In this document: piece by piece, positions 1 to 21,537 of the stretch
Layout: each line of letters begins with the position of its first letter
How positions within the stretch are numbered: the first letter of the stretch is position 1
From: Hyalangium minutum
GTDB lineage: Bacteria; Myxococcota; Myxococcia; Myxococcales; Myxococcaceae
Direction: 5' to 3'
DNA: 64,000 bases
Assembly (NCBI RefSeq): GCF_000737315.1
Contig: NZ_JMCB01000003.1
Span: 248,001-312,000 of the forward strand
Position numbers and translations under genes: made by a program
The notes under the pieces: model-generated
Told to the model about the DNA's origin: nothing
Databases searched by the model: none
What the model saw: only the letters and a program-made list of their open reading frames with translations

Positions 1-116
1 CCCAGGCGAAGCTGATGGAGCGGCTGCGTCAGGAGATCTCGGTCCGTCGCTACCCGGAGCGGCTCAAGCTGGCAGAGGAGAAGAGCAAGCCCCAGGGCGA
101 GGGGGAGGCGAGATGA
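1..116 (+). CDS. 3' end of an upstream gene (partial), translationally coupled to the Rhs gene
   Basis: Open frame from position 3 (QAKLMERLRQEISVRRYPERLKLAEEKSKPQGEGEAR*) ends in TGA 114-116, overlapping the ATG at 113-115 (ATGA). Codons are strongly GC3-biased. Confidence 0.7.
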   Translation, partial: QAKLMERLRQEISVRRYPERLKLAEEKSKPQGEGEAR

Positions 117-6100: not shown

Positions 6101-9100
6101 GAACTTCCCGAGCCGCGGACCCCCGAGCAGCAGGCCCTCTGCCTGAAGGATGACCGCGAGCTGGCGGAGGTTCCGGTGGGGGTACCGCCCCTGGCTGGGC
6201 GCGTGGTGCGCATCACTGGCTCGGCGGTGGAGGAGCCAGCGGTGGCGAGCTTCCACGTGGCCCCGGGCCGCTCCACGACGACCGTGCAGACAGCGCTGCG
6301 GCGAGTGGAGCGGGACGGGCGCGAGGTGGTGCTCAACAACCTGACGCGTGCCTACTACTACGTGCAGGTGGTGGGGCACCCCGTGCTCCCGCGGGATCGC
6401 AACAGCGATGGCACGCTGGATCCCTCGGAGGAGAACGCGCCGCCGCCCGACTTCGAGGATGATGAGGACGCCCCGGGGATTCCCGAGGGAGTCGTCACGC
6501 TGAAGAGCGTCTACCGGAGCGTGGAGCCCGAGGGGCGCATCGAGCGCTACGATCGAGCGCTCGAGCACGAGTTCCGGGTGATGGAAGTGGGCTCCTCCCG
6601 GGTCACGGCACGGACGGAGCGGGGCGAGGAGCGCCCGCTGCCCCAGCCGGGGCAGCCTCCGTCGTCTGCGGCCGCCAGCCCGGAGGACGTGGCCTATCAG
6701 TTCCTGCTCAATCTGCTGGAGCCAGAAGATCCGGGGCGGACGGGGCCGCCGAGCAGCCAGTACGTGCTGCGGCTGGGCACGGACTCCTTCGGCATCGAGT
6801 GCCCCATCGAGCTGAACGCCTCGGCGGGCACGCTGCGTGGCACGTGCGAGGGCGAGTACCTGCCGGAGGTGCTGAGCGCGGGGGATGTGCTCTACCTCGA
6901 GGTGTACTTGCGCGGTAACGCGGAGAACGTGCTGTACCGCTTCAACTTCGACGGTCTGTCCATGCGGGAGGACTACCTGGGGGCCTCCAGCCGGTTCACC
7001 GCCCACCGCGCGGTGGAGCAGCAGAATGGCAAGCCCGTGGAGGATCGGCCGATCTCCCGGCTGAACGAGGCGCACTTCTTCCTCTCGCCTCACGAGCTCA
7101 GCTCAGGACGGATCCGGCTCTGCACCAACGCGGAGTGCTCGGGCGACGGGGCGGTCATCAAGGACGCCACCGTCTTGTGGACGGCGGCGGGCTCCTACGC
7201 GGTGAGCGAGCAGGCGACGGGCAGTGCTCCGGGGCGGCTGGTCCAGGAGGTCACGTCAGGCGCAGGGAACGCGCGCCACCTTCGGCTGGGACTGCCTGCC
7301 TCGGTGACGGCGATGCCGGGGATCGCGGCGGCGGGCGCGGGGATCTTCCTGGTCAAGGACAGCGAGTCTCCGCCACGAGCGCGGCAGGTGGAGCGCCTGG
7401 GAACGCCGAAGGGACGCTTCCAGGGGCTGAACGCGCAGGCGCCGGGCCAGGAGGCCGTGGCGGGCATCAATGTGGCGGATCTGCACCTGGCCCTGACGCA
7501 CACGGACTTCGCGGTGCCGCAGCTCGCGGGAGAGGTCTCCTTCTCCAGGACCTATGCCAACCAGAACGATCTGCCCTCGCCCATGGGCGTGGGCTGGAGG
7601 CACGAGCTGGACGGCTTCGTGCTCGAGGAGAGCCTCGGCCGCTATGTCGTGAACCTGGGTGGGCAGGCCTGGGGCTTCATCCGGTGCACCACCGTGGATG
7701 AGGAAGCGCAGACCGCCAGCGGGTGCATGACGGACAAGACCCACGGCATGTCGCTGAAGGTTGACAGCGAGGGCGTCCAGCTCACCACGGAGCAGGGGAG
7801 TGTGTACCGGTTCAACCGGCCGGCGGTGAAGCGGGACCAGGAGGGCCGGCGCAAGTGGCTGCTGACCAAGTTCCACGATGGCCATGGCCGAGGCGAGCAG
7901 GACGGGTGGACGCACCTCACCTATGCCGAGGGCACCAACCGGCTCACGCAAGCGAAGCGCACGCCTGGGGAGCTGTCGCTGGAGCTCAAGTACTGCGAGG
8001 ACTTCTCCCGCGAGGACTGCGATGGCGTGGCGCCGGACGCGCCTGGCAACCTCAAGTTCCTGGCGCGCAGCGAGGGCTTCAAGCTGCTGAAGGGCGTGGT
8101 TCTCAAGAACAGCCAGGGCCAGGAGCTGCACATCGTGCGCTTCAAGCACGACCGGTGGGGCAACCTGCTGGAGGCCGAGCGCACCACGGATCCGCCCACG
8201 CAGAAGTGGAAGTACACCTACGCGCCCATTGCCGATGACGTGCCGTCCATGATGGCCTGGCGTGCCATCAATGAGCTGTCCGAGGCTCGCCTCGAGGTGG
8301 CTGGTCATCCCCAGTGGGTCGCCACCTACGGGCGCGGCGGCGCCGAGTGCTATGCGCACCTCGAGGCCTTCGAGTGTGTGAGCTCGGTGACGCAGACAGG
8401 CTTCATGGGCAACGTCCTTCAGGTGCAGGGCGAGGCGGGCCATCGCCAGCTCAAGCTCCCCACGGGGAACTCCGCGGAGGTGTCACTCAATGAGTATGGG
8501 AACGTCACCTCCTCGGCGTCGGAGGGGCAGGCGGCGCGGCGGCTGACGTGGCCCAGCTCCCAGCGCGGGGGCGAGGTGCGGCTGGAGAAGTCAGTCTCTC
8601 CGAGCGGCCGGACCCTGCGCTATGGCACGGATCACCAGCTGCGCCTGGACGAGGTGAAGCTGGAGGGGAGCTCGGACGTGGTGGGGCTCGAAGCGGGGGC
8701 GCTCGTCTCCGTGTTGGCACGCGATGCCCGGGGCTTGCCTACCTCGGGGAAGCTGTCCACGGCCAATGGTCCGGCCGAGTGGTCCATGCCCCGCTCTCAG
8801 TCGGGGGACGTGCTGGGCCTCTCACTGGGGGGCACGCAGCTCTTCTCGCGGGTCACGGACGAGGAGGGCCGGATCACCTCGGAGCGGGATGCGCTGGGCA
8901 ATACGACCACGTTCACGTTTGGCGCGTTGGGGTTGCCTGTCAGGATCCAGGTGTCCTCGGACTCCGCGACGTCGGGGCTCGTCCGCTACACGCTGGTGCT
9001 GGAGTACGACGCCTATGGGCGTCTGATCCGCCGCTTCAATGAGACGACGGGCGAAGCGGAGTCCTGGCGTTACGACGGCCAGGGCAACATGCTCGAGCAC

Positions 9101-12100
9101 ACGCTCACGGGGGAGCCGTCCGAACGGTGGACGTACACCTATACGTACGGCGATCAGCGGCTCACCGTGGTGGAGCGCCTGGAAGGCACGGCCTACACCC
9201 GCACCGCCCTCTTCGAGCAGGGGCTGCTGAAGAGCGAGCAGCTCAGCTACGGCACGGGCAACGCGTCACGTGCCTATGAGTACGAGGGCGGGCGGCTCAA
9301 GAAGAAGACAGACGAGCTGTCAGTCACCTGGGAATACACCTACGACAGCGCGGGCCGGCTGAAGGTGGTGAAAGCGAATGGCCGGACCGTGGAGTCCTAC
9401 GGGCTGGATGAGGACGGCATCCTCATCTCCACCACGGACCGCGAAGGGCACACCACCCAGATCGGCAACGACTCGCTGGGGAGACCCGTCTCGTGGACCT
9501 ATGAGGATGGGTACAAGGAGGAGGTGCGGCGGGATGCCCAGGGCGCCATCGTCTGGGAGAAGAAAATGTCTCCCGGCGCGGACAGAGCCCACGTCTTCGC
9601 TCAAGAGGTGGACGCGCTCGGACAGGTTCTGAGCCGCCGGAGCGCGGAAAATGGGAGCGGAGTGGAGATCGTCTCCACCTATGACGCCGCGGGGAGAGTG
9701 CGGACGCGAGAGGATCGGGGCAGGGGCCTGAACGAGTCCTTCGAGTATGGTGACGTGCTCGGAAGGCTGACGCGCTATCAGCGGACCGTGGCGTCCGCCG
9801 CGGGGAGCCAGAACTGGATCGAGACCCGTCAATACGTGGATGAAGGGGGCCGCACGGAGCTCCGCATCCTGCGCCAGATCGACACGGGTTTAGGGCCGCG
9901 GCAAGAGAACCAGGTCCTGGTGCTGGATGCGCTGGGGCGGGTGCTGAAGGACCAGCGTCTGGGTGCGGGGGTCTTCGAGTACACCTACGACGCGCGAGGC
10001 AACGTGCTGGAGCGTCGGCACTCCGTGCTGGGAACCACGTCGTATACCTACGACGGGTTGGGGAACCTGCTGTCGATGACGGAGCCGGGGGGCGTCACCA
10101 CCACGTACACGGTGGATGCGGCAGGCCGGGTGCTCACGCAGGAGGGGCCTCACGATCAGGAGCGGTGGACGTTCACCTACGATCTGTTCGACCGGCCGCT
10201 GACGCAGGTGCTGGCGCAGGCCGGGAGCTCGCCGCAGGCTGCGTGGAGCTTCGAGTATCCGGGGAATGGGATCGTCATTGAGACGGATCCTCTGAGTATC
10301 GCGACGACCCGGCGTTTCAACTCGCGCGAGCTGCTGCTCTCGGAGGAGCGAGGGAGCCAGACGGCGGAGTACGCCTACGATGGAACGTGGCCTCGCCTGC
10401 ACCTCATCTCCCATGAAGGTTCGGAGCGGAAGCTGACGCGGAGCTTCGATGACCTCGGGCGGCCGCTCCAGCAGGTGGAGTTCTGGAAACAGGGGGACCA
10501 CTCCTATACGTACAGCACGACCACGGCTTGGACGGGCAGGCGCGGGACTCGCCAGGAGCGGTGGGAGGCCACGGACGCGAGCGTCCGGACGCTCACGGCG
10601 ACGATCCGGGTGGACGGGCTGGGGAACCTCATCGAGCAGGAGCAGGGGGGCCTGACGGACGCTTGGGCCTACGATGCGGCCGGACTGTTGGCACGTGAGG
10701 CACTGGCGGGGCGTCCGGAAAAGCGCTTCTTCTACGAGCAGGATCGGCTCGTCCGGATGGAGAACGGCTCGGAGACGACGCTGTACGAGTATGACGCCGC
10801 GGGCCGGCAGTGGAAGGAGACGGATCCTTCGGGGCGCGAGCGCACGCGGGTCTACAACGCACAGGGCCTGGTGGCGAGCGAGCGCTTCGGAGCAGGGGAG
10901 ACGCTGGAGTCCGCGTACACTTACGATCGAGGCGGGGGCCTCCGGACGCTGACGCGTGGCGGGGCACAGTGGAACTTCACGCATGGGCCTCGGGGGGAAC
11001 TCCAGGCCGTCGAACTTCCGGGCGGGCTGGGGACCTTCACCTATCAATACGATGCCTTGCTGCAGCTCAAGGGGGTGACGCCTCCAGAGGGCGGGGGAGC
11101 AGCGGCACAGACCTTCGCGTATGACAACTGGGGCCGGCAGCTGCGCCGGACCCGAGGCTCCAGCGTCTGGTCCACGGCCTGGCAGGGCGGGTTGAGCACC
11201 ACGAGCGACCCGAATGGCGACGTGGTGGAGCAGCTCTACGACGGCCGCGGCCGCGTCGTGCGTGAGCGCTTCGCTCCCGGGAACAGCAGCCGGCCCTTCC
11301 ATGATCTGACAGCGGTGACGTACGCCTATGACGGGCTCGACCAGCTGCTGTTGGCGCAGGAGAGCCGCATCTCGGGAGCGGTCTCCAATGTGTATGACTA
11401 TGACGGGCGGAGCCGGCTGATCTCGATGCGGCGCGGCAGCGAGGAGATCTCATACACATACACGGAGAGCGGGCAGAAGCGGACGGTCACGTCTCCGTCC
11501 GGCACGTTGCGCTACGAATACGACGCGCAGGATCGGGTGCGGCGCATCGAGAGCAGCCAGGGGCCGGTGGTGGCGGTGGGCTGGGAGCCGGGAGGTCTGC
11601 TCTCGGAGGTCAGTGGCAACGGGGTGGTGGAGCGGTACGCGTATTGGGGCCATGGGCTCATCCGCTCCATCGCTTCGCAGTGGGACGGCCCCTCGGCGGG
11701 CACGCTGCGGTACGAGTACGGCTACGATGTGCGCGGCAACCGCCTGGAAGAGCGCTACACGGCACCGGGGGCCACGGCGTTCGAGGTGACGCAATTCGGG
11801 TACGACGCGGCGGACCGGCTGACCGGGGTGCGCTACCCCACAGGCGAGGCCGAACTCTACCTCCTGGCAGCTGACGGCTCGCGCCTGGAGGAGAAGCACC
11901 TGCAGGGGTACTCAGGGGGACTGACTCCCCAGGCGCTGGCCAACGCCACGAATGCCACCCAGCACTGGCGGTACGCGTATGACACCGCGGGAGGGCTGCA
12001 ACGCATTGATGACGTGTTGACGGGGGGCGTGGAAGCCCAGGTCACCACGGACGCGGGAGGCCGCGTCGTCGCGGAGATGCGAGGTGGCACCACGCGGCAG

Positions 12101-14161
12101 TATGGCTGGGACGCAGGAGGGCGGCTCGCTTCGACCAAGCGGATCACCGCGCAGGAGACGGTCGAAGCCTCATATGCGTATGGCTTTGACGGACTGCGGC
12201 GGACTCGGACCGTGAACGGAGTGAGCACCCGGTATGTGTGGGGTGCGAACGAAGAGCTGCTCGAAGAAGGGCCGGCTGTGGGAAGTCGGCTGTTGTATGC
12301 CCAGGCAGGCTTCGGAGCGGTGGCGGCGGGAGGAGAGCGGCTGCTGCGGGATGCGCTGGGCAGTGTCGTGGGGCGCGTGGGTCCGTCCACGGAGCTGTCT
12401 CGCTATGGCGCGTGGGGCGCACTCCGGCAGGGAGCGCCGCCCCAGGGCATGGAACCGTCCCTGGCCTACGCGGGGCAATCTCTCGACAGCGAAACAGGGC
12501 TGAGCTACGCGCAGCAGCGTTGGTACAGCTCGGAGACCGGGCGTTTCCTCTCGGAGGATCCCCTGGGAGCGGCGGCGTACCTCTCGACCCCGACCGAGCT
12601 GAACCCCTGGCTCTATGCGAGGTCCAATCCCCTGACGTACCTGGATCCCTCGGGTTTGTGGTCCTGGTCTCAGGCTGGAGTGGGGCTGGCCAGAGCTGGC
12701 AGGAAAGCCTGGCATGAAACGGCCAATGCTTTCTCGTGGGCCGCTCGTCCTCTGAACGGCGCGTTCGGAGTGTCCTCGGGACACTACGACAAGAAGGGAC
12801 GATGGAGGCTTCGGGATACAGGCACCTTCAAAGAGGAGGCGAAGAAGCAGCTCAAGCAGATCAAGGAGGTCGCGGAGTACGTGAAGGACCACCCGGTGGA
12901 GACGGTGACTGGGCTGGTGGTGGAGCCGGCGAAGGCGATCGGTACCGGGATTGCGGCCTGTGTCGTCGGCGCGACGACGCAGGGCGTGGTGGGCGACGAG
13001 GCGAGCCGTGACTGTGGCGAGATGCTCCCGAAGGCGATCGGATCGGTAGCGGGCACTTTCTCCGGGGCAGGCGCGGCGATCCGGACCGCAGGACGCGTCC
13101 GGCGTGCCGCGGCAGATATGCGTACGGCCATGAGGAGGAGCGTCTCGGCCGCTGATGACATGGCCAGGACGAGGCTGGGCCCGCAGCGCGGATGGCCTGA
13201 CGAGGCCCCGAAGCCCGCGAGGGCCGGCGCCAATGACTGCGCGGGTGGGGTCTGCCAACGCCCAGGACAATGCTTCGTGGCGGGCACTCCCGTCCTGACC
13301 CAGGAAGGTCTCAAGCCCATTGAGCAGATTGTCGAAGGGGAACTGGTCTGGTCACGTAACGAGGAGACGGGCCAATCGGATTGGCGGCCCGTGGTGCGGA
13401 CGTTCGTGACGCCGGACCAGCCAGTGCTGAGACTGGAGCTGACGGACGAGGCCGGTCAGCGCACCGTGCTGGGAGTGACTGGGGAGCACCCGTTCTGGGT
13501 GAAAGACCTGGGATGGGTGGGAGCGTCGTCGCTGCTCCCCGGTCAGCAGGTGGCCAGCGCGCACGGAGGATGGCTCAAGGTGGGGGCCGCGACGTGGGAG
13601 CAGGCGCGCGCCACCGTCTTCAACTTCGAAGTGGAGGAATTCCACACCTACTTCGTGGGCGACGTCGGCGCGTGGGTCCACAACAGCTGTCAGCAGCCAT
13701 GGTTGTTCGCGGCGGGACAGGGGGATGTGTACACGCTCCTGGAGAAATTCAGGAAGACTCACACGTTAGGGAAAGCGGAGACCTTTGCGCTGGCAATGCT
13801 GGAGAGTGGTGAGCGTGCATTTGGAATCAACTCGGGTTTGTTCAAGGGCAGGGATTCCCGGATTCATGGCTTTGAAATGTTGAGGGAGCACGGGTTGCTG
13901 AAGAAAGCCACCATATACAGTCAGGAGCCCTTCCTGCTGCACGCAGAGGCTCTGGCGGTCATTCGTCTGTGGGAGCGGCTGCAGGGCAAAGACCTTTCAC
14001 TGATTCGGCTGTACGTCGACAACCCAACCTGCAAGCTGTGTCTGAGCGGCCTTCCCAGACTGCAAGTGGCGCTTGGGATCAAACGCTTGGAGATTTATGG
14101 CCCGGGAACCATTCACATCAGCAAGCCGTCTCTCCACCCCATTGACCTTCTCAAGAATTGA
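113..14161 (+). CDS. Giant lipoprotein Rhs/YD-repeat polymorphic toxin (Ig-like repeats, Rhs core, HINT, deaminase-like C-terminus), 4682 aa
   Basis: Lipobox LATA-C22 (TGC 176-178). About nine Ig-like repeats ending in D(A/L)xG(N), a Big_5-like and a carboxypeptidase-regulatory-like domain, a DUF6531-like segment (SFSRTYANQ...MGVGWRH), and many YD repeats. Rhs core end GRFLSEDPLG...NPLTYLDPSG (D at 12644). HINT CFVAGT...VHN 13271-13684. HAE (13940) and PTCKLC (Cys at 14030, 14039). Confidence 0.93.
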   Translation: MIRRAPRWLWLVLGLVTLATACDRRSSEEPASAAPPAQAAQQAQALSGSTCDSVAPTGMAPGWKVAPIQAAGQNVASTIFPASVGERAILILQESAEALNQEFKTEASLNGVDWVAISRQRPLAARVVQLSASNRLELETNGGVARTSVAALSPLPCAAVEARVTHAGGSAATVETRTFTWPMGAGPALLVVESGSASQVTGRVVLGSLTVQVPAAGQLPVVEVVSPQASNTLRVEVGGSAGAWVRAVVVEPDMLPPIVSMGQPAEGAQLNASPVEVQGTAGAGAVAVKVGAVDAVLSQGQYTAQVPLVEGPNALVAEVRDQCGNVARVCRPVVLTTAPPTVVIEGVTDGQVSREPLHPTWTVTSSGPVTVEATLDGAPFVGGTAVTAEGSHELRVMVRDAAGREAQAQVGFAIDTTPPRLTLTGVEEGERRNTPAVLGFTVEEEHPGSVEATLDGAPMASGDTVSAEGAHVWTVAATDAAGNRSEVQRHFVVDVTAPTLEVLSPAPGSFTQAGSVEVVVAAADDGPVAGVWLGNAELTLGTDGKYRSLVVLEEGSNLLVLVARDAAGNSAQSSLAVTRDSTPPQLTLTTPAEGAKVAGDSVQVEGQAQDTTPLTVRVAGMTAAVAADGHFQLSVAVAQGPVSLEVVATDAAGNTARLVRGIRVNTTPPRLDLTAPASGTVTEESSIEVSGFARAADRTDTVRVEVAGTEHGVRADGSFSVQVPLEVGLNTVSVTAVDGYGLRTPRTVRVERQGPQGPGPGDGGSGDGSGGGTDGGSGEDTPDAGSGAPDAGSPGPVPDGGIPSEPPVLVLASPQENSLWGVERVSVLGRVEGGDLPLQVTVDGLPAAVTGRQFSASVALPEGSSMLHVRAVDALGRIAEVRRQVRVDQTPPFLEVTRPEQPSTTVSESPYLVEGLAGDAYLAGVTVNGAPVMVLAGHFSSSVALVAGDNTVEVEAVDLAGNRSRAVRTLRVEALPPQLTVLEPVDGSEATEPVVRVTVKVESSAPLDEVRIGTGIAANLGSGQYTAQVPLALGENVIPVSARDTLGMTGSATVRVRYRDPSTEPLTVTGVDPSDQATELEPDTLVNVAFNKAVKPASVRAGFTVSVEGQPLAGGWSVAHGAQIVSFIARDPLPEGATLQVRVAGVEPVQGPGMQGEFRSMFTVRRPLTRLRGQVVDARREPVSGVRVEVEGQGLFTRTGADGNWALFGVQPGQVVLRYEGGASSEGQVFPTVRRRFAVEAERDNEESTVVLTPVDAESAEPVDTSLPLHLTFGGRHGALEVDIPAGGLILEGGSTRGLVTLTQLPLHSLPVPTEGALRPVVVWQLQPAGTRLVRPVVLRLPNRLSAPPGSRAALFTYDPEAHRLHIAGLATLSADGTQLVSDGVLEAGSLEYFGYLPLPEESSVARAGAVSPRVANLGPLPRPPSDGLIRPLTQGFGLDPGSALAIWDSYQPFIAPAAVMGTVRGPREQAVALDLSSPSLGESRRVALDSQLRYRMPLSVQARSLYPLSSSGRDSLVLALEGVGPEGQRLGPPSGGSWRQESPQGQRAELSTQVELSLGTSSLWATGTTARGRNVLRLNAELSLADGGVPDGGATSGLLRVQRGDGGSAGGEDSEGLVRFAGMPVRVTDGWHEGGSISGPAGRYAASIIMLQSSWIPPASVLACVRLPIGWNVQSWVAWDGRVRTRKAPSTAEECSGPWEVLAWPSPIIPDIDVLVDVRWLHGNITFVDRQGEPLPPPCSDLVVRQGTEVTGLSQDAVRSTEVHFFREDNLSTPIVSYAVADPEQCDSYPGAPHGRYAKVRYGPSTLSRVASRRDSQRLLPGDRLVVFAVNHATGYSGMEVVTVPSVNQSSRAEDGSCPADDAAGGPMAVQDGSRTVSVSRCTLQDLGIEADLKLYPPEIDVRVERQSRAEGSSQEALEPSLVRHKGAATTRDNFVSVATHWRVRRQPARSWDPGVLPPVNSSCEGGSQAAGSTCAPQILLDEGPRGTWAEHYCGELPEPRTPEQQALCLKDDRELAEVPVGVPPLAGRVVRITGSAVEEPAVASFHVAPGRSTTTVQTALRRVERDGREVVLNNLTRAYYYVQVVGHPVLPRDRNSDGTLDPSEENAPPPDFEDDEDAPGIPEGVVTLKSVYRSVEPEGRIERYDRALEHEFRVMEVGSSRVTARTERGEERPLPQPGQPPSSAAASPEDVAYQFLLNLLEPEDPGRTGPPSSQYVLRLGTDSFGIECPIELNASAGTLRGTCEGEYLPEVLSAGDVLYLEVYLRGNAENVLYRFNFDGLSMREDYLGASSRFTAHRAVEQQNGKPVEDRPISRLNEAHFFLSPHELSSGRIRLCTNAECSGDGAVIKDATVLWTAAGSYAVSEQATGSAPGRLVQEVTSGAGNARHLRLGLPASVTAMPGIAAAGAGIFLVKDSESPPRARQVERLGTPKGRFQGLNAQAPGQEAVAGINVADLHLALTHTDFAVPQLAGEVSFSRTYANQNDLPSPMGVGWRHELDGFVLEESLGRYVVNLGGQAWGFIRCTTVDEEAQTASGCMTDKTHGMSLKVDSEGVQLTTEQGSVYRFNRPAVKRDQEGRRKWLLTKFHDGHGRGEQDGWTHLTYAEGTNRLTQAKRTPGELSLELKYCEDFSREDCDGVAPDAPGNLKFLARSEGFKLLKGVVLKNSQGQELHIVRFKHDRWGNLLEAERTTDPPTQKWKYTYAPIADDVPSMMAWRAINELSEARLEVAGHPQWVATYGRGGAECYAHLEAFECVSSVTQTGFMGNVLQVQGEAGHRQLKLPTGNSAEVSLNEYGNVTSSASEGQAARRLTWPSSQRGGEVRLEKSVSPSGRTLRYGTDHQLRLDEVKLEGSSDVVGLEAGALVSVLARDARGLPTSGKLSTANGPAEWSMPRSQSGDVLGLSLGGTQLFSRVTDEEGRITSERDALGNTTTFTFGALGLPVRIQVSSDSATSGLVRYTLVLEYDAYGRLIRRFNETTGEAESWRYDGQGNMLEHTLTGEPSERWTYTYTYGDQRLTVVERLEGTAYTRTALFEQGLLKSEQLSYGTGNASRAYEYEGGRLKKKTDELSVTWEYTYDSAGRLKVVKANGRTVESYGLDEDGILISTTDREGHTTQIGNDSLGRPVSWTYEDGYKEEVRRDAQGAIVWEKKMSPGADRAHVFAQEVDALGQVLSRRSAENGSGVEIVSTYDAAGRVRTREDRGRGLNESFEYGDVLGRLTRYQRTVASAAGSQNWIETRQYVDEGGRTELRILRQIDTGLGPRQENQVLVLDALGRVLKDQRLGAGVFEYTYDARGNVLERRHSVLGTTSYTYDGLGNLLSMTEPGGVTTTYTVDAAGRVLTQEGPHDQERWTFTYDLFDRPLTQVLAQAGSSPQAAWSFEYPGNGIVIETDPLSIATTRRFNSRELLLSEERGSQTAEYAYDGTWPRLHLISHEGSERKLTRSFDDLGRPLQQVEFWKQGDHSYTYSTTTAWTGRRGTRQERWEATDASVRTLTATIRVDGLGNLIEQEQGGLTDAWAYDAAGLLAREALAGRPEKRFFYEQDRLVRMENGSETTLYEYDAAGRQWKETDPSGRERTRVYNAQGLVASERFGAGETLESAYTYDRGGGLRTLTRGGAQWNFTHGPRGELQAVELPGGLGTFTYQYDALLQLKGVTPPEGGGAAAQTFAYDNWGRQLRRTRGSSVWSTAWQGGLSTTSDPNGDVVEQLYDGRGRVVRERFAPGNSSRPFHDLTAVTYAYDGLDQLLLAQESRISGAVSNVYDYDGRSRLISMRRGSEEISYTYTESGQKRTVTSPSGTLRYEYDAQDRVRRIESSQGPVVAVGWEPGGLLSEVSGNGVVERYAYWGHGLIRSIASQWDGPSAGTLRYEYGYDVRGNRLEERYTAPGATAFEVTQFGYDAADRLTGVRYPTGEAELYLLAADGSRLEEKHLQGYSGGLTPQALANATNATQHWRYAYDTAGGLQRIDDVLTGGVEAQVTTDAGGRVVAEMRGGTTRQYGWDAGGRLASTKRITAQETVEASYAYGFDGLRRTRTVNGVSTRYVWGANEELLEEGPAVGSRLLYAQAGFGAVAAGGERLLRDALGSVVGRVGPSTELSRYGAWGALRQGAPPQGMEPSLAYAGQSLDSETGLSYAQQRWYSSETGRFLSEDPLGAAAYLSTPTELNPWLYARSNPLTYLDPSGLWSWSQAGVGLARAGRKAWHETANAFSWAARPLNGAFGVSSGHYDKKGRWRLRDTGTFKEEAKKQLKQIKEVAEYVKDHPVETVTGLVVEPAKAIGTGIAACVVGATTQGVVGDEASRDCGEMLPKAIGSVAGTFSGAGAAIRTAGRVRRAAADMRTAMRRSVSAADDMARTRLGPQRGWPDEAPKPARAGANDCAGGVCQRPGQCFVAGTPVLTQEGLKPIEQIVEGELVWSRNEETGQSDWRPVVRTFVTPDQPVLRLELTDEAGQRTVLGVTGEHPFWVKDLGWVGASSLLPGQQVASAHGGWLKVGAATWEQARATVFNFEVEEFHTYFVGDVGAWVHNSCQQPWLFAAGQGDVYTLLEKFRKTHTLGKAETFALAMLESGERAFGINSGLFKGRDSRIHGFEMLREHGLLKKATIYSQEPFLLHAEALAVIRLWERLQGKDLSLIRLYVDNPTCKLCLSGLPRLQVALGIKRLEIYGPGTIHISKPSLHPIDLLKN
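881..3290 (+). repeat. Tandem bacterial Ig-like domain repeats (about 9) with a central Gly/Asp-rich linker
   Basis: Recurrent units of about 80-90 aa start PP(x)L(x)(L/V)xxP and end (V/A)xAxD(A/L)xGN. Linker GPGPGDGGSGDGSGGGTDGG...PDAG at about 2370-2520. Boundaries are approximate. Confidence 0.75.
13271..13684 (+). other. Pre-toxin HINT / bacterial intein-like domain within the Rhs protein (138 aa)
   Basis: Block A C1FVAGTPV, block B TGEHPFW (TxxH), block F VFNFEVEEFHTYFV, block G WVHN followed by Ser(+1). Confidence 0.92.
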
Positions 14162-14173
14162 CCCGGCATATAG

Positions 14174-15640
14174 CTATTGCGCCTGCGGATTCTGAGTCGT
14201 GGGCGGGCGCGCTCGTTCCCAAGCAGGGTCGTAGCACTCCTCCTGCCACTGGTAGGTATCGTCGCTGCATGGCGGTCTCTTGTCGGCCACGCGCACCCAG
14301 CAGCCGCCATGAATGATTTTCTCCCAGTCTCGCTTGCACGGGGGGCGGCGCTGGCCCGGGAGCGGTTGCTTGGGCATGTCCAGGGAGATGGATCTGGCCT
14401 CAGAGGGAATCGATTGAACTTCCATCCGAGTGGTGAGCGCATCGTCTCCCAATCCGCGGGTACCGGCATCTGGCTCCATGCCCGCATCCAGCGCTTCAGC
14501 ACGCGCCGTCTCAGACGGCTTTGCGCTCCACTCGGGAGCCATCCAGCAGGGCCCCACCACCGCCAGAGACATCGTGAGCAGCGCGAGGAGATTCCTCCAA
14601 GGGACGGGCCGAACTTGCTGCCTCGCCTGGAGAGTTCCTGCTTTGTGCTCAGTAGCTTTGGCTGGGGCCGTCTTCGCATCGACGGGCCTCGCGGGCCCGG
14701 CTTGAGTCTGTACCGCAGGCTTCACTGAAGCCCAGAGAGGAACATCCGCTGCGGAACCTAGATGCTCCGCCGAGGTTTCCGCTGCTTGTGCCAACTCACT
14801 TGCCGTCCCGCGAGCCTCAGGCTCCGCCGCGAGCAGCCGCTCCACCAGCGCCGAGAGCTCAGGCACCACTCGGGGGTTGAGTTCATGCGTGCATTGGCGT
14901 CGCGCAACTCCACCCTGGATTTGTTTCTTGAGGTCTTCAGGCTCCGTGCCAGGAGGGGGATAGATCCGAGTCAATAACCGGTACAGCGTCACGCCCAGCG
15001 CATAGAGATCGTCCGCCGGGGTGGCGTGGTAGCGCGCTCCCGGCGTGCTCCAGTGTTGCCACTCGAAGCGTAGCGCCTCGGGGCTGCGGTACTCAGGCGT
15101 GTTGGGAGGCAGCACCCGATGGGTGAGTGGGGGAGCGCCCTTCCACGTGCCCGAACCAAAATCCGTGAGCACCGCCCGGCCCTCGGGCTCCACAAGAATG
15201 TTGTCGCCCTTCAGGTCGCGGTGCAGGCATTCCCCGCGGTGCAACACCTCCAACCCCCATGCCAGCTGGGCCACCACCCGGAGCACTTCGCGGCTGGTGG
15301 GAGTGTGCATCCGCGCCCACTCGTACAGCCGCTGGCCCCGGATCCACTCCATCACCACATAGGGATGCCGGACTCCAGGCTCGGCCTCCCACCAACCTTG
15401 GTCGATGAGTCGAGGCACGGCCGGGTGGCGGGTGCGTCTGAGCAACTCCACCTCCCGTTCGAAGCGCGGGTCATGAGGGAACACCGCCATCTTCAGTGCC
15501 ACGGGCGGGGAGCCCGGGTCGTCGGCGCGCCGGGCGCGGAACACGGCGCCGTAGCTGCCCCGGCCGGCATAGCCCTCGATGCGCCAGGGGCCGACCAGAT
15601 CTCCGATGTTCAGCGAGTCAGGTGTCCTCGTGCCCGTCAT
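14174..15640 (-). CDS. Hanks-type Ser/Thr protein kinase with a TM helix and a Cys-rich C-terminal domain
   Basis: GRGSYG, VALK, HRDLKGDN, DFG and TPEYRSPE motifs; hydrophobic LLALLTMSLAVVG; C-terminal PGQRRPPC...GGCW...RPPC...CY. Confidence 0.92.
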   Translation of the reverse strand: MTGTRTPDSLNIGDLVGPWRIEGYAGRGSYGAVFRARRADDPGSPPVALKMAVFPHDPRFEREVELLRRTRHPAVPRLIDQGWWEAEPGVRHPYVVMEWIRGQRLYEWARMHTPTSREVLRVVAQLAWGLEVLHRGECLHRDLKGDNILVEPEGRAVLTDFGSGTWKGAPPLTHRVLPPNTPEYRSPEALRFEWQHWSTPGARYHATPADDLYALGVTLYRLLTRIYPPPGTEPEDLKKQIQGGVARRQCTHELNPRVVPELSALVERLLAAEPEARGTASELAQAAETSAEHLGSAADVPLWASVKPAVQTQAGPARPVDAKTAPAKATEHKAGTLQARQQVRPVPWRNLLALLTMSLAVVGPCWMAPEWSAKPSETARAEALDAGMEPDAGTRGLGDDALTTRMEVQSIPSEARSISLDMPKQPLPGQRRPPCKRDWEKIIHGGCWVRVADKRPPCSDDTYQWQEECYDPAWERARPPTTQNPQAQ

Positions 15641-15809
15641 GGCACCGGAGACTACCCAAGGGGTCGCTCGCCGTCATGCCGCTCTTTCAGGTAGGATGGC
15701 GGCGATGGAGAATCTCCCGAGAGAGACGGAGCGTCTCCGGCCGTGGACGGTTCACAGGCGTCTCGCTCTGGCAACCGCTTGGCTCGGGAGTTGCTTGAGG
15801 CCGGGCGGT

Positions 15810-16910
15810 ATGACGGGACTGCACGACCGATTCTTCCGCTACCTCTTCAACCACACCGCGCGCACCGAGGCTTTGCTGCGGCACAACCTGCCCGCGTTCC
15901 TCATGGCCGAGGTGGATTGGCCGTCGCTGCGGCGAGAGTCCGGCACGCTGGTCGACGGCGAGCGCGAGACTCGCAAGGACCTGCTCTTCTCCGCCCGCTG
16001 TCTCCAGTCCGCACCGGAGGAGCCTCCGCACTTCTTTCTCATCGAGCATCAATCCTCGGTGGACCCGTGGATGGCACTGCGGATGCACGACTACGCTTGG
16101 CGTCTCATCCAGCACTGGCGAGAGCAGCACCCCCAGAGCCGATGGATTCCCGAGGTGACGCCCCTGGTGGTGTACCCCCGGCAAGGTCGGACGTGGTCAG
16201 CGCCCCTGCGGCTGGGTGACCACTATCTGGTGCGAGCGCGCGCGGACAAAGAGGGGCTGCCTTGGATTTTGCGTTCTGGGTACTGGATGGACGCCGTCTC
16301 GAACGAGCAGGAGGCACGGGCTCACGGGGGACCACCGCTGGTTTCTCTGGGATTGCTGGTGCTCAGCTTCGCGGGTACGCGGCAATTGGCGAGGAGGTTG
16401 CCGCACTGGTGCGATCTGTTTGCCCAGGTGTACGCGACAGATGGTCCCCAAACGCTCTATCGCATGGTGCGCTATGTGCACCATCTGGGGGACGAGGAGG
16501 CCGTTGCGGCAATTCGGCGCGTGCTACATTCCATTATGGAGTCCACAAGGGCGGAGGCGTTCATGCGAACCATGGCAGAGGTGCTCAAAGAGCGGGGACG
16601 CCGCGAGGGGTGGATCGAGGGGAAGGCAGAAGGGAAGGCCGAGGGGAAGGCCGAGGGGAAGGCCGAGGGGAAGGCCGAGGGGAAGGCCGAGGGGAAGGCC
16701 GAGGGGAAGGCCGAGGGGCTCGCCGAGGGAGAGGCCAAGGGCTTGGTCAAGGCTCTCCTCCGCTTGTTAGCGGCACGAGGCCTACGTGTCGATGAGGCCT
16801 CCCAGGAGCGCATCCAGAATTGCGGCGATGTCGCCACACTGGAGCGCTGGCTCGACCGGGCTCTGAACGCTACGCGGCTCACCGACGTCCTGGACGGCCC
16901 CGCGCAGTAA
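15810..16910 (+). CDS. Rpn/YhgA-like (Transposase_31) PD-(D/E)XK-type nuclease, 366 aa
   Basis: Family N-terminus MTGLHDRFFRYLF with GAGG at 15797-15800 before ATG 15810 (the track start at 15579 is too long). KDLLF...LIEHQS core; (GKAE)n repeats; DUF4351-like tail LERWLDRALNATRLTDVL. Confidence 0.88.
   Translation: MTGLHDRFFRYLFNHTARTEALLRHNLPAFLMAEVDWPSLRRESGTLVDGERETRKDLLFSARCLQSAPEEPPHFFLIEHQSSVDPWMALRMHDYAWRLIQHWREQHPQSRWIPEVTPLVVYPRQGRTWSAPLRLGDHYLVRARADKEGLPWILRSGYWMDAVSNEQEARAHGGPPLVSLGLLVLSFAGTRQLARRLPHWCDLFAQVYATDGPQTLYRMVRYVHHLGDEEAVAAIRRVLHSIMESTRAEAFMRTMAEVLKERGRREGWIEGKAEGKAEGKAEGKAEGKAEGKAEGKAEGKAEGLAEGEAKGLVKALLRLLAARGLRVDEASQERIQNCGDVATLERWLDRALNATRLTDVLDGPAQ
16620..16739 (+). 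repeat. In-frame 12-bp tandem repeat GGGAAGGCCGAG encoding (GKAE)n
   Basis: Seven perfect copies at 16632-16715, one variant at 16620-16631 and two degenerate copies at 16716-16739. Confidence 0.97.
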
Positions 16911-16915
16911 TCGCG

Positions 16916-18163
16916 TCAGAACAGCGCGTGCTCCGCGAGGAGCACCGCCAGCCCCACGATGAAGCTCAACAGCGTCACTGGCACGCCCACGCGCAGGTAG
17001 TCCAGGAAGGACATCTTCACCTTGTCGCGCGCGGCCTCGAAGACGATCAGGTTCGCCACGCTGCCAATCAACGTCAGGTTGCCCGCCAGCGTGGAGCACA
17101 GCGCCAGCACGTGCCAGCCCAGCTCCGGGTCCTGCAGCGTCGGAACCCACGTGCGCGCCAGCATCACGAACGGCACGTTGCTGAACAGGTTCGACGCCAC
17201 CAGCGTCAGCGCCGCGAACCCCAGCGTCTCCCGCCACGGTGGCCCCGCCATCAACGGCGCGAACAGCGCCCGCAGCTCCTCCGTCCAGCCGTACTTGTTC
17301 ACCCCGTACACCACGATGAACAGGCTGGCGAAGAACACCAGCAGCACGAAGTCCACTCGCTCCATGATGGCCCGAGGCTCTCGGCGCGCCATGGCCATCA
17401 CCACCGCCGCTCCCGTCAGCGCGCTCCAGCTCATGGAGAAGCCCGCGAAGAAGGCCACCACCACCGCCGCCATCACCGCCACCGTCAGCACCATCAGCGG
17501 TCGATCCACCGGAGGCGGCTGCGGCTGCGGCTCGAAGCGCTTCGTGGGCAGCTCCTTGCGGAACAGGTACAGCAGCATTGCGATGACAATCCCCGTGGAC
17601 AGGATCGCCGGCAGCGCCATGTACGCGGCGAAGCTCGCGTAGGACAGCTTCGAGGCCCCCTGAATCAGCATGTTCTGCGGGTTGCCCGTGAACGTGGCCA
17701 CCGAGCCGCTGTTGGAGCCCATGCACACCGCCAGCAGGTACGGCACGGGCGGCAGGCGCGCGTCCTCCACCACCACCAGCACCAGCGGCGTCAGCATCAG
17801 GCACACGGTGTCATTCACCAGGAACGCGGACAGGAGCGCGCTGATCCCCGTCACCGCCGCCAGCAGCAGCCGGGGCGTGTGCGCCAGCCGCACCGTGTGG
17901 GCCCCCGCCGTCCGGAAGAACGCCGCCTGCGCCAGGTACGCCGCCAGCAGCATCATCCCCAGCAGCAGGACGATCGTGTCCAGATCCACCGCGTGCCGCG
18001 AGACGTCCTCGCTGTGGTTGAAGACCTCGGCGGGGGTGACGACGCCCAGGACCACCATGAGCACGGCACCCAGCAGGGCGCCGCCCGGCCGATCCAGCTT
18101 CAGGAACGGGAGGCGCGCCCCGGCAATGAACACATACGTCAGCAAGAAGATGGCGAGGGCCAC
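16916..18163 (-). CDS. ArsB/NhaD (ion transporter superfamily) anion permease
   Basis: Highly hydrophobic 415 aa with SAFLVND, GSNSGSVATFTGNPQN and STLAGNLTLIGSVANLIV hairpin motifs. Confidence 0.85.
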   Translation of the reverse strand: MALAIFLLTYVFIAGARLPFLKLDRPGGALLGAVLMVVLGVVTPAEVFNHSEDVSRHAVDLDTIVLLLGMMLLAAYLAQAAFFRTAGAHTVRLAHTPRLLLAAVTGISALLSAFLVNDTVCLMLTPLVLVVVEDARLPPVPYLLAVCMGSNSGSVATFTGNPQNMLIQGASKLSYASFAAYMALPAILSTGIVIAMLLYLFRKELPTKRFEPQPQPPPVDRPLMVLTVAVMAAVVVAFFAGFSMSWSALTGAAVVMAMARREPRAIMERVDFVLLVFFASLFIVVYGVNKYGWTEELRALFAPLMAGPPWRETLGFAALTLVASNLFSNVPFVMLARTWVPTLQDPELGWHVLALCSTLAGNLTLIGSVANLIVFEAARDKVKMSFLDYLRVGVPVTLLSFIVGLAVLLAEHALF

Positions 18164-18231: not shown

Positions 18232-19308
18232 ATGACCGGCACCAGCCGGCCCGAAGAGGGGCCGGTGCAGCTCGACGGCAGCGAAGGGGAGGGGGGAGGG
18301 CAGATCCTCCGCTCGGCGCTCGCCCTGTCGCTCATCACCGGCCGCCCGTTCCACCTCACCCGCCTGCGTGAGCGCAGGGATCCCCCCGGCCTGCGCCCTC
18401 AGCACCTGGCCTGCGTGCGAGGCGCCGAGGCCCTCAGCTCCAGCACCAGCGTGGGCGCCGTCCTGGGCGGCTCAGAGCTGTCCTTCACCCCCGGCCCCGT
18501 GCGTCCCGGCGACTACGTACTGGAGGTGGGCACTGCAGGCAGCACCCCGTTGCTCTTCCAGTGCCTCTTCTTCCCATTGGCCCTGGCCGGAGGCGGGAGC
18601 CTCACCCTGCGCGGCGGCACGCACCTGCCGCACAGCCCCAGCTACCACTACCTCGCCAACGTCTGGCTGCCGGTGATGCACGCCTATGGGTTCCCGGCCG
18701 CGCTCCGGCTGACGCACGCCGGCTTCTACCCAGAGGGTGGCGGAGAGTTTCAAGGAGAGATCTCGGCTCCGGCCGAGCCGCCCCGGCTCGTGGATCTGCC
18801 CACGCGCGGCATGCTGCAGGACATCACCGTCAGCACCTTCGTGGGGGGCCTGCCGTTCACCATCGCCGATCGCCAGTCCCGTGCCGCCGAGGCCGCCTTG
18901 CGTGAGCGGGGGCTCTACAGCCTCGTGCAGAACCGGGCCTTGCCCGTGGCGGGCTCTGCCGGAACCGTCACTTTCATCCTGGCGCAGTTCGAGAACACCT
19001 TCGCGGGCTTCACCGCCATCGGTGAGCGCGGACGGCCCGCAGAGGAAGTGGGGCGCGAGGCCGCTGACGCCGTGGCCCGCTTCATGGAATCCGCCGGCGC
19101 CATCGACGAGCACCTGGGGGATCAGATCCTGCTCCCGGCGGCGCTGCTGGCCTCGGGGCGGCTGGGCCCGGCCTCACCGGGAACCACGCGCTTCACGGCC
19201 GCGAAGGTCACCGAGCACCTGACGACGCACGCACGGGTCCTCGAGCGCTTCCTGCCAGTCAAAGTGACGGTGGAGCCGGGCGGTACGGTGGAGGTCCGCC
19301 CGGCTTGA
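18232..19308 (+). CDS. rtcA: RNA 3'-terminal phosphate cyclase
   Basis: LDGSEGEGGGQILRSAL, GLRPQHL, GFYPEGGG and DEHLGDQILLP motifs, with the catalytic His in EHLTT. Confidence 0.93.
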   Translation: MTGTSRPEEGPVQLDGSEGEGGGQILRSALALSLITGRPFHLTRLRERRDPPGLRPQHLACVRGAEALSSSTSVGAVLGGSELSFTPGPVRPGDYVLEVGTAGSTPLLFQCLFFPLALAGGGSLTLRGGTHLPHSPSYHYLANVWLPVMHAYGFPAALRLTHAGFYPEGGGEFQGEISAPAEPPRLVDLPTRGMLQDITVSTFVGGLPFTIADRQSRAAEAALRERGLYSLVQNRALPVAGSAGTVTFILAQFENTFAGFTAIGERGRPAEEVGREAADAVARFMESAGAIDEHLGDQILLPAALLASGRLGPASPGTTRFTAAKVTEHLTTHARVLERFLPVKVTVEPGGTVEVRPA

Positions 19309-19356: not shown

Positions 19357-19704
19357 TCAGGACTCTTCTTCGCCCTCGGCCGCCGCAGCCGCCGAAGTAC
19401 CGAAGGAGTTCGAGTCCGCGATCTCCTTCGTCGTGTTGCGGTAGGCCCGGAGCGCGAACGGCGTGGCTGCCAGGAACACGAGCCCGGCCAGGCCGATGGC
19501 GGCCCAGGGCACCGGGGTCTCCTTGATCTGGATGTCCTTGCTATAGGCGTTCATGTTGCCCCCGAGCTGCTGAGCCTTGAGGGCGGACTTCTCCTCATCG
19601 GACATCTCGGAGGGGGGCTGGAACTCCTGCACGGGGCGGCCAGCCAGCACGGCGCTACCCGAGAGCAGGGCGGACAGGAGGACGAGTCGCGAGAGCGTAC
19701 GCAT
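19357..19704 (-). CDS. Hypothetical small exported/membrane protein
   Basis: Signal-like MRTLSRLVLLSALLSGSAVLA, a second hydrophobic segment and typical codon bias. Confidence 0.7.
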   Translation of the reverse strand: MRTLSRLVLLSALLSGSAVLAGRPVQEFQPPSEMSDEEKSALKAQQLGGNMNAYSKDIQIKETPVPWAAIGLAGLVFLAATPFALRAYRNTTKEIADSNSFGTSAAAAAEGEEES

Positions 19705-19821
19705 GGAATCCCATCCTATCACGGGTCGGGCCCTCCATCGCCAGAGGGGACCATCGCCGCCCGTACAGCTCCATGAAAGCAGGCTTGCGTCCGTCCCAGC
19801 CGTCCATTAGGCGCGGAGCGA

Positions 19822-21537
19822 ATGCGCCTGCTCTTCGTTGGCCTCGCGAACCTGCTGCTGGGGGTGTGGACCCTGCTTGGGCTGCCCTTCCGCCTGCTTG
19901 CCTCCCGGAACCGTCCCACCTACGTCCGCTTCCGGCTCTCCGGGGAGCTGCCCTACCGTCAGCCGCGCAAGGCCCGGCGGTTTTTCTCCGGCTCGAAGCC
20001 CGAGCCCGCCACCGTCACCTCCCTGGTGGCCTTCGGTGAGTCGCTCAAACTGCTGGCCCAGGATCCTCACGTGAAGGGCATCCTCCTGGAGATCGAGGGG
20101 CTGGAGCTCGGCTCGGCGAAGAAGGACGCGGTGGTGAAGCTGCTCACGGACTTCCGGGCGGCGGGCAAGCGGGTGGTGGGGTGGGCCGTGAGCGTGGACA
20201 ACCTGGGCTACCAGATCCTCTGCGCGGCGGACGAGGTGCTGCTGGCCCCCGCCGGGAGGCTCGAGCTGGTGGGCTATGCCGCGGAGGCCACGGCGATCGG
20301 AGAGGGGCTCGCGCGCGTGGGCATCCAGGCGCACTTCGTCCGCCGGGGTGACTACAAGACGGCCCCCGAGCTCTTCACCCATGCCCATGTCTCGGACATC
20401 CAGCGCCAGACCATCGAGGGCTTCCTGGACGAGCGCTATGCCGATCTCATCGACTCGATAGCCCGGGGGCGCAAGCGCACGCCCGAGGAGGTCCGAGCAA
20501 TCATCGACGTCGGCCCCTACAGCGCCCAGCGCGCGCTGGCGGCGGGACTGGTGGACGGGCTGTGCAGCGAGGCAGATCTCCCCGCCCGGCTGGACGAGCG
20601 CAGGCGCGAGGAGAAGGACTCGGACGATGCCGAGGAGCCGATCGAGCCAATGGCGTCCTGGCTGGGCGCGCGGCCGTTCCCTCCGATGAAGTGGCGGCCA
20701 GTGAAGCGGCGGCCGAAGCTCGGGCTGGTGGTGATCTCGGGGATCATCGCCCCGGGCAAGGGCTCCAGCGGCGAGCTGGGGCCGAAGATTGCGGGCTCCG
20801 AGGCGGTGGTGAAGGCCCTGCGTGCGGCCAGCCGGGACAAGCGGGCCAAGGCGGTGGTGCTCTACATCGACAGCCCGGGGGGCTCGGCGCTGGCCTCGGA
20901 GTTGATCCTCGAGGCCGTGCAGCGGGTGGCGCGCAAGAAGCCGGTGATCGCCTACGTGGATCAAGTCTGCGCCAGCGGCGGGTACATGGCGGCGCTCGGG
21001 GCCAAGGAGATCTGGTCGGCGCCGCACGCGATCGTCGGCTCCATTGGCGTCTTCGCTGGGAAGTTCGAGGCCTCGGGGCTCATGGATCGCCTGGGCATTC
21101 GCCGGACACTGATCTCCCGAGGCGAGAACGCCGGGATCTTCTCCACCTCGCGAGGCTTCACCCCGCACGAGCGCGCCGCGCTGGAGGCGGAGGTGGAGGA
21201 GACGTACCAGGCCTTCCTCGCCCACGTGGCCAAGGCCCGCGGGAAGACGAAGGAGGAGATCCACACTCGCGCCGAGGGCCGCGTGTACTCGGGCACGCGC
21301 GCGCTGGCAGCGGGGCTGGTGGACCGCGCGGGAAGCTTCGAGGAGGTGTGCCGCCATGCGCTCGACCTGGCGAAGGTACCTCCCGGCAAGTTCGACGTGG
21401 GGCTGTACGCCACGCCCGATAGAGGGCTCTCCCTGCTGCAGATCCTCCTGAGCCTGTCTGGCGCTCACCTCTATGCACTGTGCCCCTCCGCCTGGTCTCT
21501 CATGGGAGGGAAGGCAGGCAGGCGATTCGAGGGGTAG
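19822..21537 (+). CDS. sppA: Signal peptide peptidase SppA (protease IV)
   Basis: Tandem S49 domains: GDYKTAPE (Lys), IDSPGGS, ASGGY (Ser), VGSIGV, GRVYSG. Confidence 0.9.
   Translation: MRLLFVGLANLLLGVWTLLGLPFRLLASRNRPTYVRFRLSGELPYRQPRKARRFFSGSKPEPATVTSLVAFGESLKLLAQDPHVKGILLEIEGLELGSAKKDAVVKLLTDFRAAGKRVVGWAVSVDNLGYQILCAADEVLLAPAGRLELVGYAAEATAIGEGLARVGIQAHFVRRGDYKTAPELFTHAHVSDIQRQTIEGFLDERYADLIDSIARGRKRTPEEVRAIIDVGPYSAQRALAAGLVDGLCSEADLPARLDERRREEKDSDDAEEPIEPMASWLGARPFPPMKWRPVKRRPKLGLVVISGIIAPGKGSSGELGPKIAGSEAVVKALRAASRDKRAKAVVLYIDSPGGSALASELILEAVQRVARKKPVIAYVDQVCASGGYMAALGAKEIWSAPHAIVGSIGVFAGKFEASGLMDRLGIRRTLISRGENAGIFSTSRGFTPHERAALEAEVEETYQAFLAHVAKARGKTKEEIHTRAEGRVYSGTRALAAGLVDRAGSFEEVCRHALDLAKVPPGKFDVGLYATPDRGLSLLQILLSLSGAHLYALCPSAWSLMGGKAGRRFEG

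Follow-up and report, generated by a model that had tools for sequence, protein, structure and literature searches.

The window analysed here is a 64-kb stretch of contig JMCB01000003.1 (assembly GCA_000737315.1), and all coordinates are counted from its first base. JMCB00000000 is Hyalangium minutum DSM 14724T, a myxobacterium (PMC5441343). A single open reading frame (ORF) at 113-14161 of the + strand encodes an RHS protein of 4,682 aa, recognized from the ORF list, its translation and its Pfam architecture; the NCBI assembly has this gene call as well. Bases 13685-14161 (+ strand) are the last 158 codons and the stop of this uninterrupted ORF and form no separate gene. We suggest that they encode a toxic tip (residues 4525-4682), namely a MafB19-like zinc deaminase with nucleic-acid cytosine as the probable target, which is carried on an exchanged cassette without a cognate immunity gene.

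The RHS protein begins with a lipoprotein-type signal peptide (MIRRAPRWLWLVLGLVTLATA ahead of Cys22; 113-178, +), read from the translation and fitting the lipobox pattern by eye. Seven Glucodextran_B/Big immunoglobulin (Ig)-like domains and one carboxypeptidase-regulatory-like domain are placed by Pfam upstream of the shell. The shell consists of DUF6531 and RHS/YD repeats (7487-12667, +; Pfam RHS_repeat 1.3e-46, DUF6531 1e-6) and closes with the core motifs EDPLG ... YLDPSGLWSW, which end at residue 4185. It is followed by a linker of ~200 aa (12668-13270, +), where the translation has Gly/Ala-rich hydrophobic stretches and no Pfam match, and then by the pre-toxin HINT domain (13271-13684, +; PF07591 PT-HINT, E = 3.5e-24), predicted to be a self-cleaving release module. 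HINT extends from CFVAGTP at residue 4387 to AWVHN at residue 4524 (residues 4394-4525 with E = 6e-23 in the Pfam scan of the full protein). The HN junction behind it is kept here and conserved in 9 related loci, and the tip begins with Ser4525. The protein combines a secretion signal, a shell, a pre-toxin domain and a tip that varies between homologous loci; by this predicted layout, with the self-cleaving module ahead of the variable tip, it is a textbook polymorphic toxin.

The deaminase core of the tip is ~145 aa long. The initial annotation had read LHAEALA at 13940, CKLC within YVDNPTCKLC at 14030-14041 and a tail with LPRL...LGIKRLEI, and all three lie exactly there, with the Tyr of YVDNPTCKLC at 14012. 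HAE is His4610-Ala-Glu4612 (13940-13948, +), at the start of helix 2, and CKLC is Cys4640-Lys-Leu-Cys4643 (14030-14041, +), at the start of helix 3. The invariant columns of the family alignment show His4610, Cys4640 and Cys4643 to be placed for zinc binding and Glu4612 to be placed as the putative proton shuttle. Thr4557 and Asn4573 are family-conserved residues of strands 1 and 2; the latter (FGIN; 13829-13831, +; column 96% N) is the clade-typical Asn ending strand 2 in the signature of Iyer et al. Asn4637 (14021-14023, +) stands in place of the basic residue of the family motif VD[R/K]xTCxxC and is the only Asn in this column.

The tip also differs from its carrier in composition. Its GC content is 0.556 versus 0.693 for the whole ORF, and the GC content of third codon positions (GC3) is 0.70 versus 0.83-0.86. 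The drop of GC3 falls between the 150-base windows 13541-13690 and 13691-13840. Earlier counts of 33 and 28 G or C among the 60 bases from 13801 and from 13861 are reproduced, and the reference count for the line at 1201 is 46 rather than the 47 given with them.

Family and predicted fold of the tip

An exhaustive HMMER scan (phmmer, E <= 1e-3) of 1.84 billion cluster representatives with the domain gives 62 proteins, the best of them 53% identical (E = 2e-25). Seven matches (P0004, P0027, P0036, P0049, P0052, P0060 and P0061) were dropped as WD40 or other repeat proteins matched over many short stretches. In the ~55 true relatives, which are proteins of up to 2,862 aa, the domain lies nearly always at or near their own C-terminus, and several of them have the HN junction just ahead of it. 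The alignment of 42 sequences (A1) has invariant G, H, E, D, C and C, and its consensus reads FGVNS ... LtHAEAhALmRA ... YVDRxTCxxC ... LGIxxLxI. PF14437 (MafB19-deam) is matched by 40 of the 42 members, with the best E of 3.8e-21. A family hidden Markov model (HMM), from which the query and its closest relative had been left out, recovers the query with 93.6 bits (E = 5e-28). A second match of this model near 63.6 kb (12.9 bits over 29 residues) was rejected as spurious.

The weaker Pfam matches of the query are dCMP_cyt_deam_1 and Bd3614-deam. SCP1.201 (PF14428), DYW (PF14432) and Pput_2613 (PF14427) are not listed for it at E <= 1, nor are they among the nine Pfam families matched by any of the 42 relatives. 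The relatives emerged from the exhaustive HMMER search; a word-indexed homologue search with the domain alone and tblastn against plasmids give no match, and an NCBIfam scan of the domain gives nothing useful. A sequence search of the PDB with the single domain returns only a spurious Ku match. With the family profile the same database yields marginal dCMP and cytidine deaminases amid CxxC metal-binding and glutaredoxin noise, so no solved relative is detectable in this way.

The MafB19 clade is defined by an Asn ending strand 2, HxE, a Val ending strand 3, the motif +xxCxxC and a Gly starting strand 4, together with the C-terminal-hairpin topology and an association with RHS and HINT (PMC3239186, Iyer et al. 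2011). The tip has the Asn in FGIN, HAE (and not CxE or DxE) in helix 2, Val4635 in LYVD (column 91% V) and the Gly of LGIKRLEI (91% column). No helix follows strand 4, and strand 5, which comes after an insertion, is of low confidence. It resembles the MafB19-like toxins of PF14437 in the Asn, HAE, Val and Gly, in the predicted lack of helix 4, in xxCxxC and in being joined to RHS repeats as well as a HINT peptidase. It differs from them by the Asn in place of the basic residue, by a score below the gathering score of the family and by the absence of an adjoining SUKH, SUFU or other immunity gene. The initial annotation had taken PTCxxC, as compared with PCxxC, for an unusual spacing that leaves the subfamily open. 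We revise both points. PTCxxC is no new spacing, because xTCxxC after a basic residue is normal for the MafB19 clade (PMC3239186); the relatives match PF14437, and the real deviation is that Asn has replaced Arg/Lys at the third residue ahead of the first Cys. By sequence comparison the subfamily is settled as MafB19-like, and within it the tip forms a small subclade at the periphery together with P0001/L003, L004 and L028. The domain is a divergent newcomer to a well-described kind of toxin and not a new kind, and we hold it very probable that the tip is a MafB19-clade deaminase toxin tip.

The AlphaFold2 model, run on A1, has a mean predicted local distance difference test (pLDDT) score of 87 and a predicted TM-score (pTM) of 0.84. 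Its elements follow in the order alpha-beta-beta-alpha-alpha-beta-alpha-beta, with no helix 4 predicted. In model numbering the strands span 22-26, 32-36, 94-99 and 122-126, and the helices 2-13, 44-56, 70-73, 75-87 (opening with HAE) and 105-118 (opening with CxxC). The [H/C]xE and CxxC motifs at helix starts and the three-layer alpha/beta/alpha order are those of the cytidine deaminase (CDA) superfamily, and the predicted fold is CDA-like. A Foldseek search, which the initial annotation had proposed as a check, agrees with this. Among the PDB matches listed nearly all are deaminases: PPR-DYW (probability 0.99), guanine deaminase (0.98) and DddA (0.94), and also CDA, APOBEC3H/3B and TadA. Against BFVD, viral dCMP and nucleoside deaminases head the list at a similar score level.

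HxE and CxxC could in principle be a chance pair of motifs in a C-terminal extension that is no deaminase. In all six frames of the window the bare pattern H.E-x18-40-CxxC has 3 occurrences and HAE...CxxC has one, and the query alone scores 22.4-22.6 bits against PF14437 (E ~1e-4), under the 27-bit gathering score, so that its membership of this family is transitive only, via the relatives and the family HMM. However, the domain is more than a chance motif because of the homology found by phmmer and by the family HMM, with its 93.6-bit match; the model is confident and CDA-like, and the fold matches listed are almost exclusively deaminases. We consider the chance explanation effectively refuted, with a negligible probability left to it. 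The reading of HxE plus CxxC as a deaminase-fold domain, already proposed in the initial annotation, is borne out by the model, the Foldseek and BFVD matches and the family HMM.

Between strand 2 and HAE lies a 36-residue insert, SGLFKGRDSRIHGFEMLREHGLLKKATIYSQEPFLL, which lacks both SGW and HhH/GFP motifs. The element after strand 2 sets the engagement of single-stranded DNA (ssDNA) or double-stranded DNA (dsDNA) in DddA, SsdA, DddB and APOBEC3A (PMC13346905). By analogy, the insert is most likely the substrate-selecting element of the tip. DddA (BaDTF1, SCP1.201-like), the dsDNA cytosine deaminase and type VI secretion system (T6SS) toxin of Burkholderia cenocepacia, shares with the tip the predicted fold division, the C-terminal position and the zinc site of a His and two Cys with a catalytic Glu (Foldseek probability 0.94, TM 0.42-0.46 to 6u08). 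Unlike DddA, to which it is 13% identical in sequence, the tip has another post-strand-2 insert and no SCP1.201 match. Its predicted delivery is by a Sec/lipoprotein RHS protein with HINT and not by a T6SS, and its locus has no DddI-type immunity partner. SsdA (BaDTF2, DYW-like) and DddB (BaDTF3, Pput_2613-like) are likewise interbacterial toxin deaminases with a post-strand-2 insertion (PMC13346905), and DYW domains are the top structural matches of the tip among those listed. It differs from both in having no DYW or Pput_2613 match and in an insert without the SGW of SsdA or the HhH/GFP of DddB.

Cassette exchange at the HINT junction and the immunity gene

With the linker and HINT as the query, a scan finds an orthologous RHS locus, L004, in a metagenome-assembled genome (MAG) of the Myxococcaceae, as well as paralogues in Archangium and in other phyla. 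The scan of genome contigs with the domain alone gives no match, its patterns being too specific, and it missed L004. In blastn, L004 1-4438 corresponds to window 9252-13683 with 74% identity, and then the similarity ends. It returns at L004 6926-8057, which corresponds to window 15713-16909, upstream of a YhgA-like gene common to both loci. Protein identity to L004 is ~72% in the RHS part, 73-90% in HINT and 38-60% directly after VHNSC; along the linker it is 52-61% over most of the length and 34% over the last ~50 aa. The tip of L004 belongs to the same deaminase family, whereas the Archangium paralogues and other loci have unrelated tips behind the shared HN junction. The two deaminase tips, of the window and of L004, are ~45% identical as proteins and do not align as DNA, their synonymous sites being saturated. 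The L004 tip and the gene next to it are compositionally foreign, with a GC3 of 0.48-0.50 versus 0.76. To judge from these alignments, the tip is a swapped-in, horizontally exchanged cassette, with the boundary placed to the base, at the HINT/toxin junction. The initial annotation had proposed a swapped-in warhead; the DNA homology to the MAG stops at 13683, just ahead of the start it had given, and the unrelated tips in Archangium speak for the same. The locus illustrates neatly how a cassette is exchanged precisely at the HINT junction.

The variable cassette without DNA similarity to the MAG locus (13684-15712 by blastn) includes the toxin domain and a convergent gene for a Ser/Thr protein kinase of 488 aa (14174-15640, -; Pkinase 2.5e-31; NCBI calls), which occupies the place of the immunity gene of the relatives. 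A membrane segment is predicted in the kinase, and its C-terminal tail is rich in Cys. The kinase gene falls within the part that is not syntenic, where the MAG carries the immunity gene and a periplasmic-binding-protein-like lipoprotein. The GC3 of the kinase gene is 0.74, versus 0.86 for the RHS gene. Because of this lower GC3, the kinase may have come in together with the toxin tip.

The stop of the kinase gene is 12 bases past that of the toxin (14161), and the NCBI calls show no small gene between them; the initial annotation had passed over this lack of an immunity gene. The closest relatives are organized differently. In L004 an ORF of 144 aa overlaps the toxin stop by 35 bases, and P0001 in L003 and the L028 tip have small homologues of it at the corresponding place (L003 3122-3475, L004 4849-5283 and L028 818-1267, directly after or overlapping the toxin). 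Their products share the motifs WERGSGDCGL ... LIYED ... VPRxWF (L003 versus L004, E = 9e-25). The protein of L003 has no Pfam match, and none is recorded for the other two. The set of 5.8 billion proteins holds three members of this family, which stand next to the closest relatives only, and none of them is from the H. minutum genome; the family is apparently small and undescribed. In the distant relatives L001 and L002 a small ORF on the same strand also follows directly after the toxin. In the window, the small hypothetical ORF at 19357-19722 and the other neighbours have no immunity-family match. The + strand ORFs at 14158-14316 and 14177-14728 were rejected as immunity genes, being Arg/Pro-rich and antisense to the kinase tail. 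A tip without a neighbouring immunity gene bears on how myxobacteria spare their kin from poisoning.

The right flank of the cassette is formed by the YhgA-like gene (Transposase_31, Rpn-type; 15810-16910, +; PF04754 9.5e-23; synteny). It contains eight tandem EGKA units at 16617-16712, and the repeat of its L004 orthologue is shorter and different (EGEARGEARGVAKGVAKG). Further downstream, precomputed Pfam labels give housekeeping-type genes: an ArsB/CitMHS permease (16916-18163, -), an RtcA RNA 3'-phosphate cyclase (18232-19308, +) and an S49 peptidase (19822-21537, +). No further toxin or immunity modules are seen among these neighbours by the same labels.

Asn4637, substrate and proposed mechanism

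The query is 42-53% identical, by different measures, to P0001/L003, L004 and L028. It keeps 18 of the 22 columns conserved in at least 80% of the family, with conservative replacements in three of the four others (I to L, V to F and L to V). The remaining column has Asn for Arg at VD[R]xTC; this is Asn4637, three residues ahead of the first Cys. This position is R in 96% of the members and K in P0030 and P0056, so that all 53 others have R or K. Asn4637 is the sole radical replacement and lies beside the zinc site. In comparison with the three nearest relatives, the loop of the query before strand 1 is shorter and an insertion is present before strand 5.

These changes could mean that the warhead is attenuated or disarmed: the immunity gene would have been lost or would never have arrived, and the Arg-to-Asn replacement, with or without the C-terminal insertion, would have weakened or abolished the activity, so that the domain is tolerated as an orphan tip bound for decay or replacement. 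Asn in place of the R/K of all other members, the insertion relative to L003, L004 and L028, and the homologous immunity gene found at the toxin stop in all three of these loci and missing here are in line with this. However, the ORF is intact, the four zinc and catalytic residues are kept together with the 18 columns, and the other three deviations are conservative. The pattern of retained columns looks like that of an enzyme under purifying selection and not of a decaying remnant, and the immunity gene may sit elsewhere in this 11-Mb-class genome. We consider a disarmed warhead unlikely.

We suggest the following mechanism for an active tip. The RHS shell, exported by Sec and anchored as a lipoprotein, would be displayed at the surface and bring the C-terminal region outside the cell. 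PT-HINT would then cut between VHN and S, freeing the 158-aa domain in or on the target cell. The freed domain would enter this cell, as is presumed from what is known of polymorphic toxins. There it would work as a zinc-dependent MafB19-like deaminase belonging to the CDA fold's C-terminal-hairpin division and deaminate cytosine in nucleic acid, most likely in DNA, and the target would be poisoned or mutagenised.

WapA of the Bacillus subtilis WapA/WapI pair is a Sec-dependent protein with an N-terminal signal peptide instead of T6SS adaptors, an RHS shell and a variable C-terminal toxin. By its translation and Pfam matches the H. minutum protein likewise has a signal peptide, an RHS shell and a variable tip. 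Unlike WapA, whose tip is a tRNase, it comes from a Gram-negative bacterium and has a lipobox, seven Ig-like domains, PT-HINT and a deaminase tip, with no WapI-like gene following.

The polynucleotide substrate we only infer, by analogy, because PF14437 also catches dCMP deaminases and the NEB screen lacked enzymes with PF14437 as the best match. Members of PF14437, a Pfam family which splits into two structural clades, deaminate cytidine in ssDNA as nCas9 fusions (10.1101/2023.05.21.541555). BaDTF3/DddB belongs to the Pput_2613 family and not to PF14437 (PMC7901873). For the PF14437/MafB19-like clade we found only screening-level activity reports in the literature and, in the copy of the PDB that was searched, no solved structure.

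An active deaminase toxin might also act on something other than DNA cytosine, such as RNA or tRNA (C or A) or the free pools of dCMP, dCTP and CTP. The best fold match is the RNA-editing PPR-DYW deaminase, TadA and tRNA deaminases are also among the matches listed, and PF14437 and PF00383, the latter touched by 19 of the 42 relatives, overlap on phage dCMP deaminases. However, the fold scores do not separate the substrates, and the only activity reported for PF14437 members is on ssDNA cytosine (10.1101/2023.05.21.541555). The experimentally defined toxin deaminases of polymorphic systems are so far all DNA-acting (10.1101/2023.06.29.547047, PMC7901873, PMC13346905). Hence we regard a substrate other than DNA cytosine as improbable.

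Taken as a whole, the reading of the element as a toxic MafB19-like RHS tip, directed at nucleic-acid cytosine and carried on an exchanged cassette without a cognate immunity gene, has in our estimate a probability of about 65%. Several observations weigh against it. No cognate immunity gene stands on the same strand immediately downstream, and tblastn with the immunity proteins of the relatives finds nothing over the whole window (E > 0.05). The query alone stays below the Pfam gathering score, and NPTCKLC has no basic residue at the + of +xxCxxC. Strand 5 and the 8-9-residue insertion before it (tail 131-139) have a pLDDT below about 50-55. The Foldseek E-values against the PDB are >= 0.01 with TM-scores of 0.35-0.5, so no solved structure is close. 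On the side of the substrate, none of the 175 enzymes of the NEB screen has PF14437 as its best match (10.1101/2023.06.29.547047), and PF14437 overlaps phage mononucleotide dCMP deaminases (10.1101/2024.12.05.627091).

A rather speculative and quite improbable idea is that Asn4637, the remodelled C-terminus and the missing immunity gene are connected, the enzyme having shifted to a substrate or context which the producer lacks or hides. Examples would be a modified base, RNA or some target specific to the prey. If it is true, the tip would be a deaminase toxin that is self-safe and has a specificity new among toxin deaminases, useful for base editing or modification mapping. DddA, SsdA, DddB and MsddA already serve as tools for mitochondrial or CRISPR-free base editing and methylation sequencing, and each clade has its own substrate preference. 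The domain is of interest here, being small, coming from a cultured and sequenced type strain and carrying a natural substitution at an otherwise invariant position close to the active site.

Delivery part and upstream genes

Between the Ig/CarboxypepD_reg domains and DUF6531 the RHS protein has ~1,100 residues (~1300-2450, window about 4000-7480) without a Pfam match at E <= 0.01. In the delivery part of the toxin, this stretch forms a putative module that is large and uncharacterised.

The RHS toxin gene is apparently the third one in an operon. The DNA upstream was read in locus L029 1-10004, where a window coordinate equals the L029 coordinate minus 9888. The first gene of the operon is an ORF of 10,488 aa, with Big_7 Ig domains as the only ones seen over its last 3,045 aa. 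The second encodes a PpiC-type peptidyl-prolyl isomerase of 278 aa, and its stop overlaps the start codon of the RHS gene. This foldase, adjoining two giant surface proteins, may be a part of their export or assembly.

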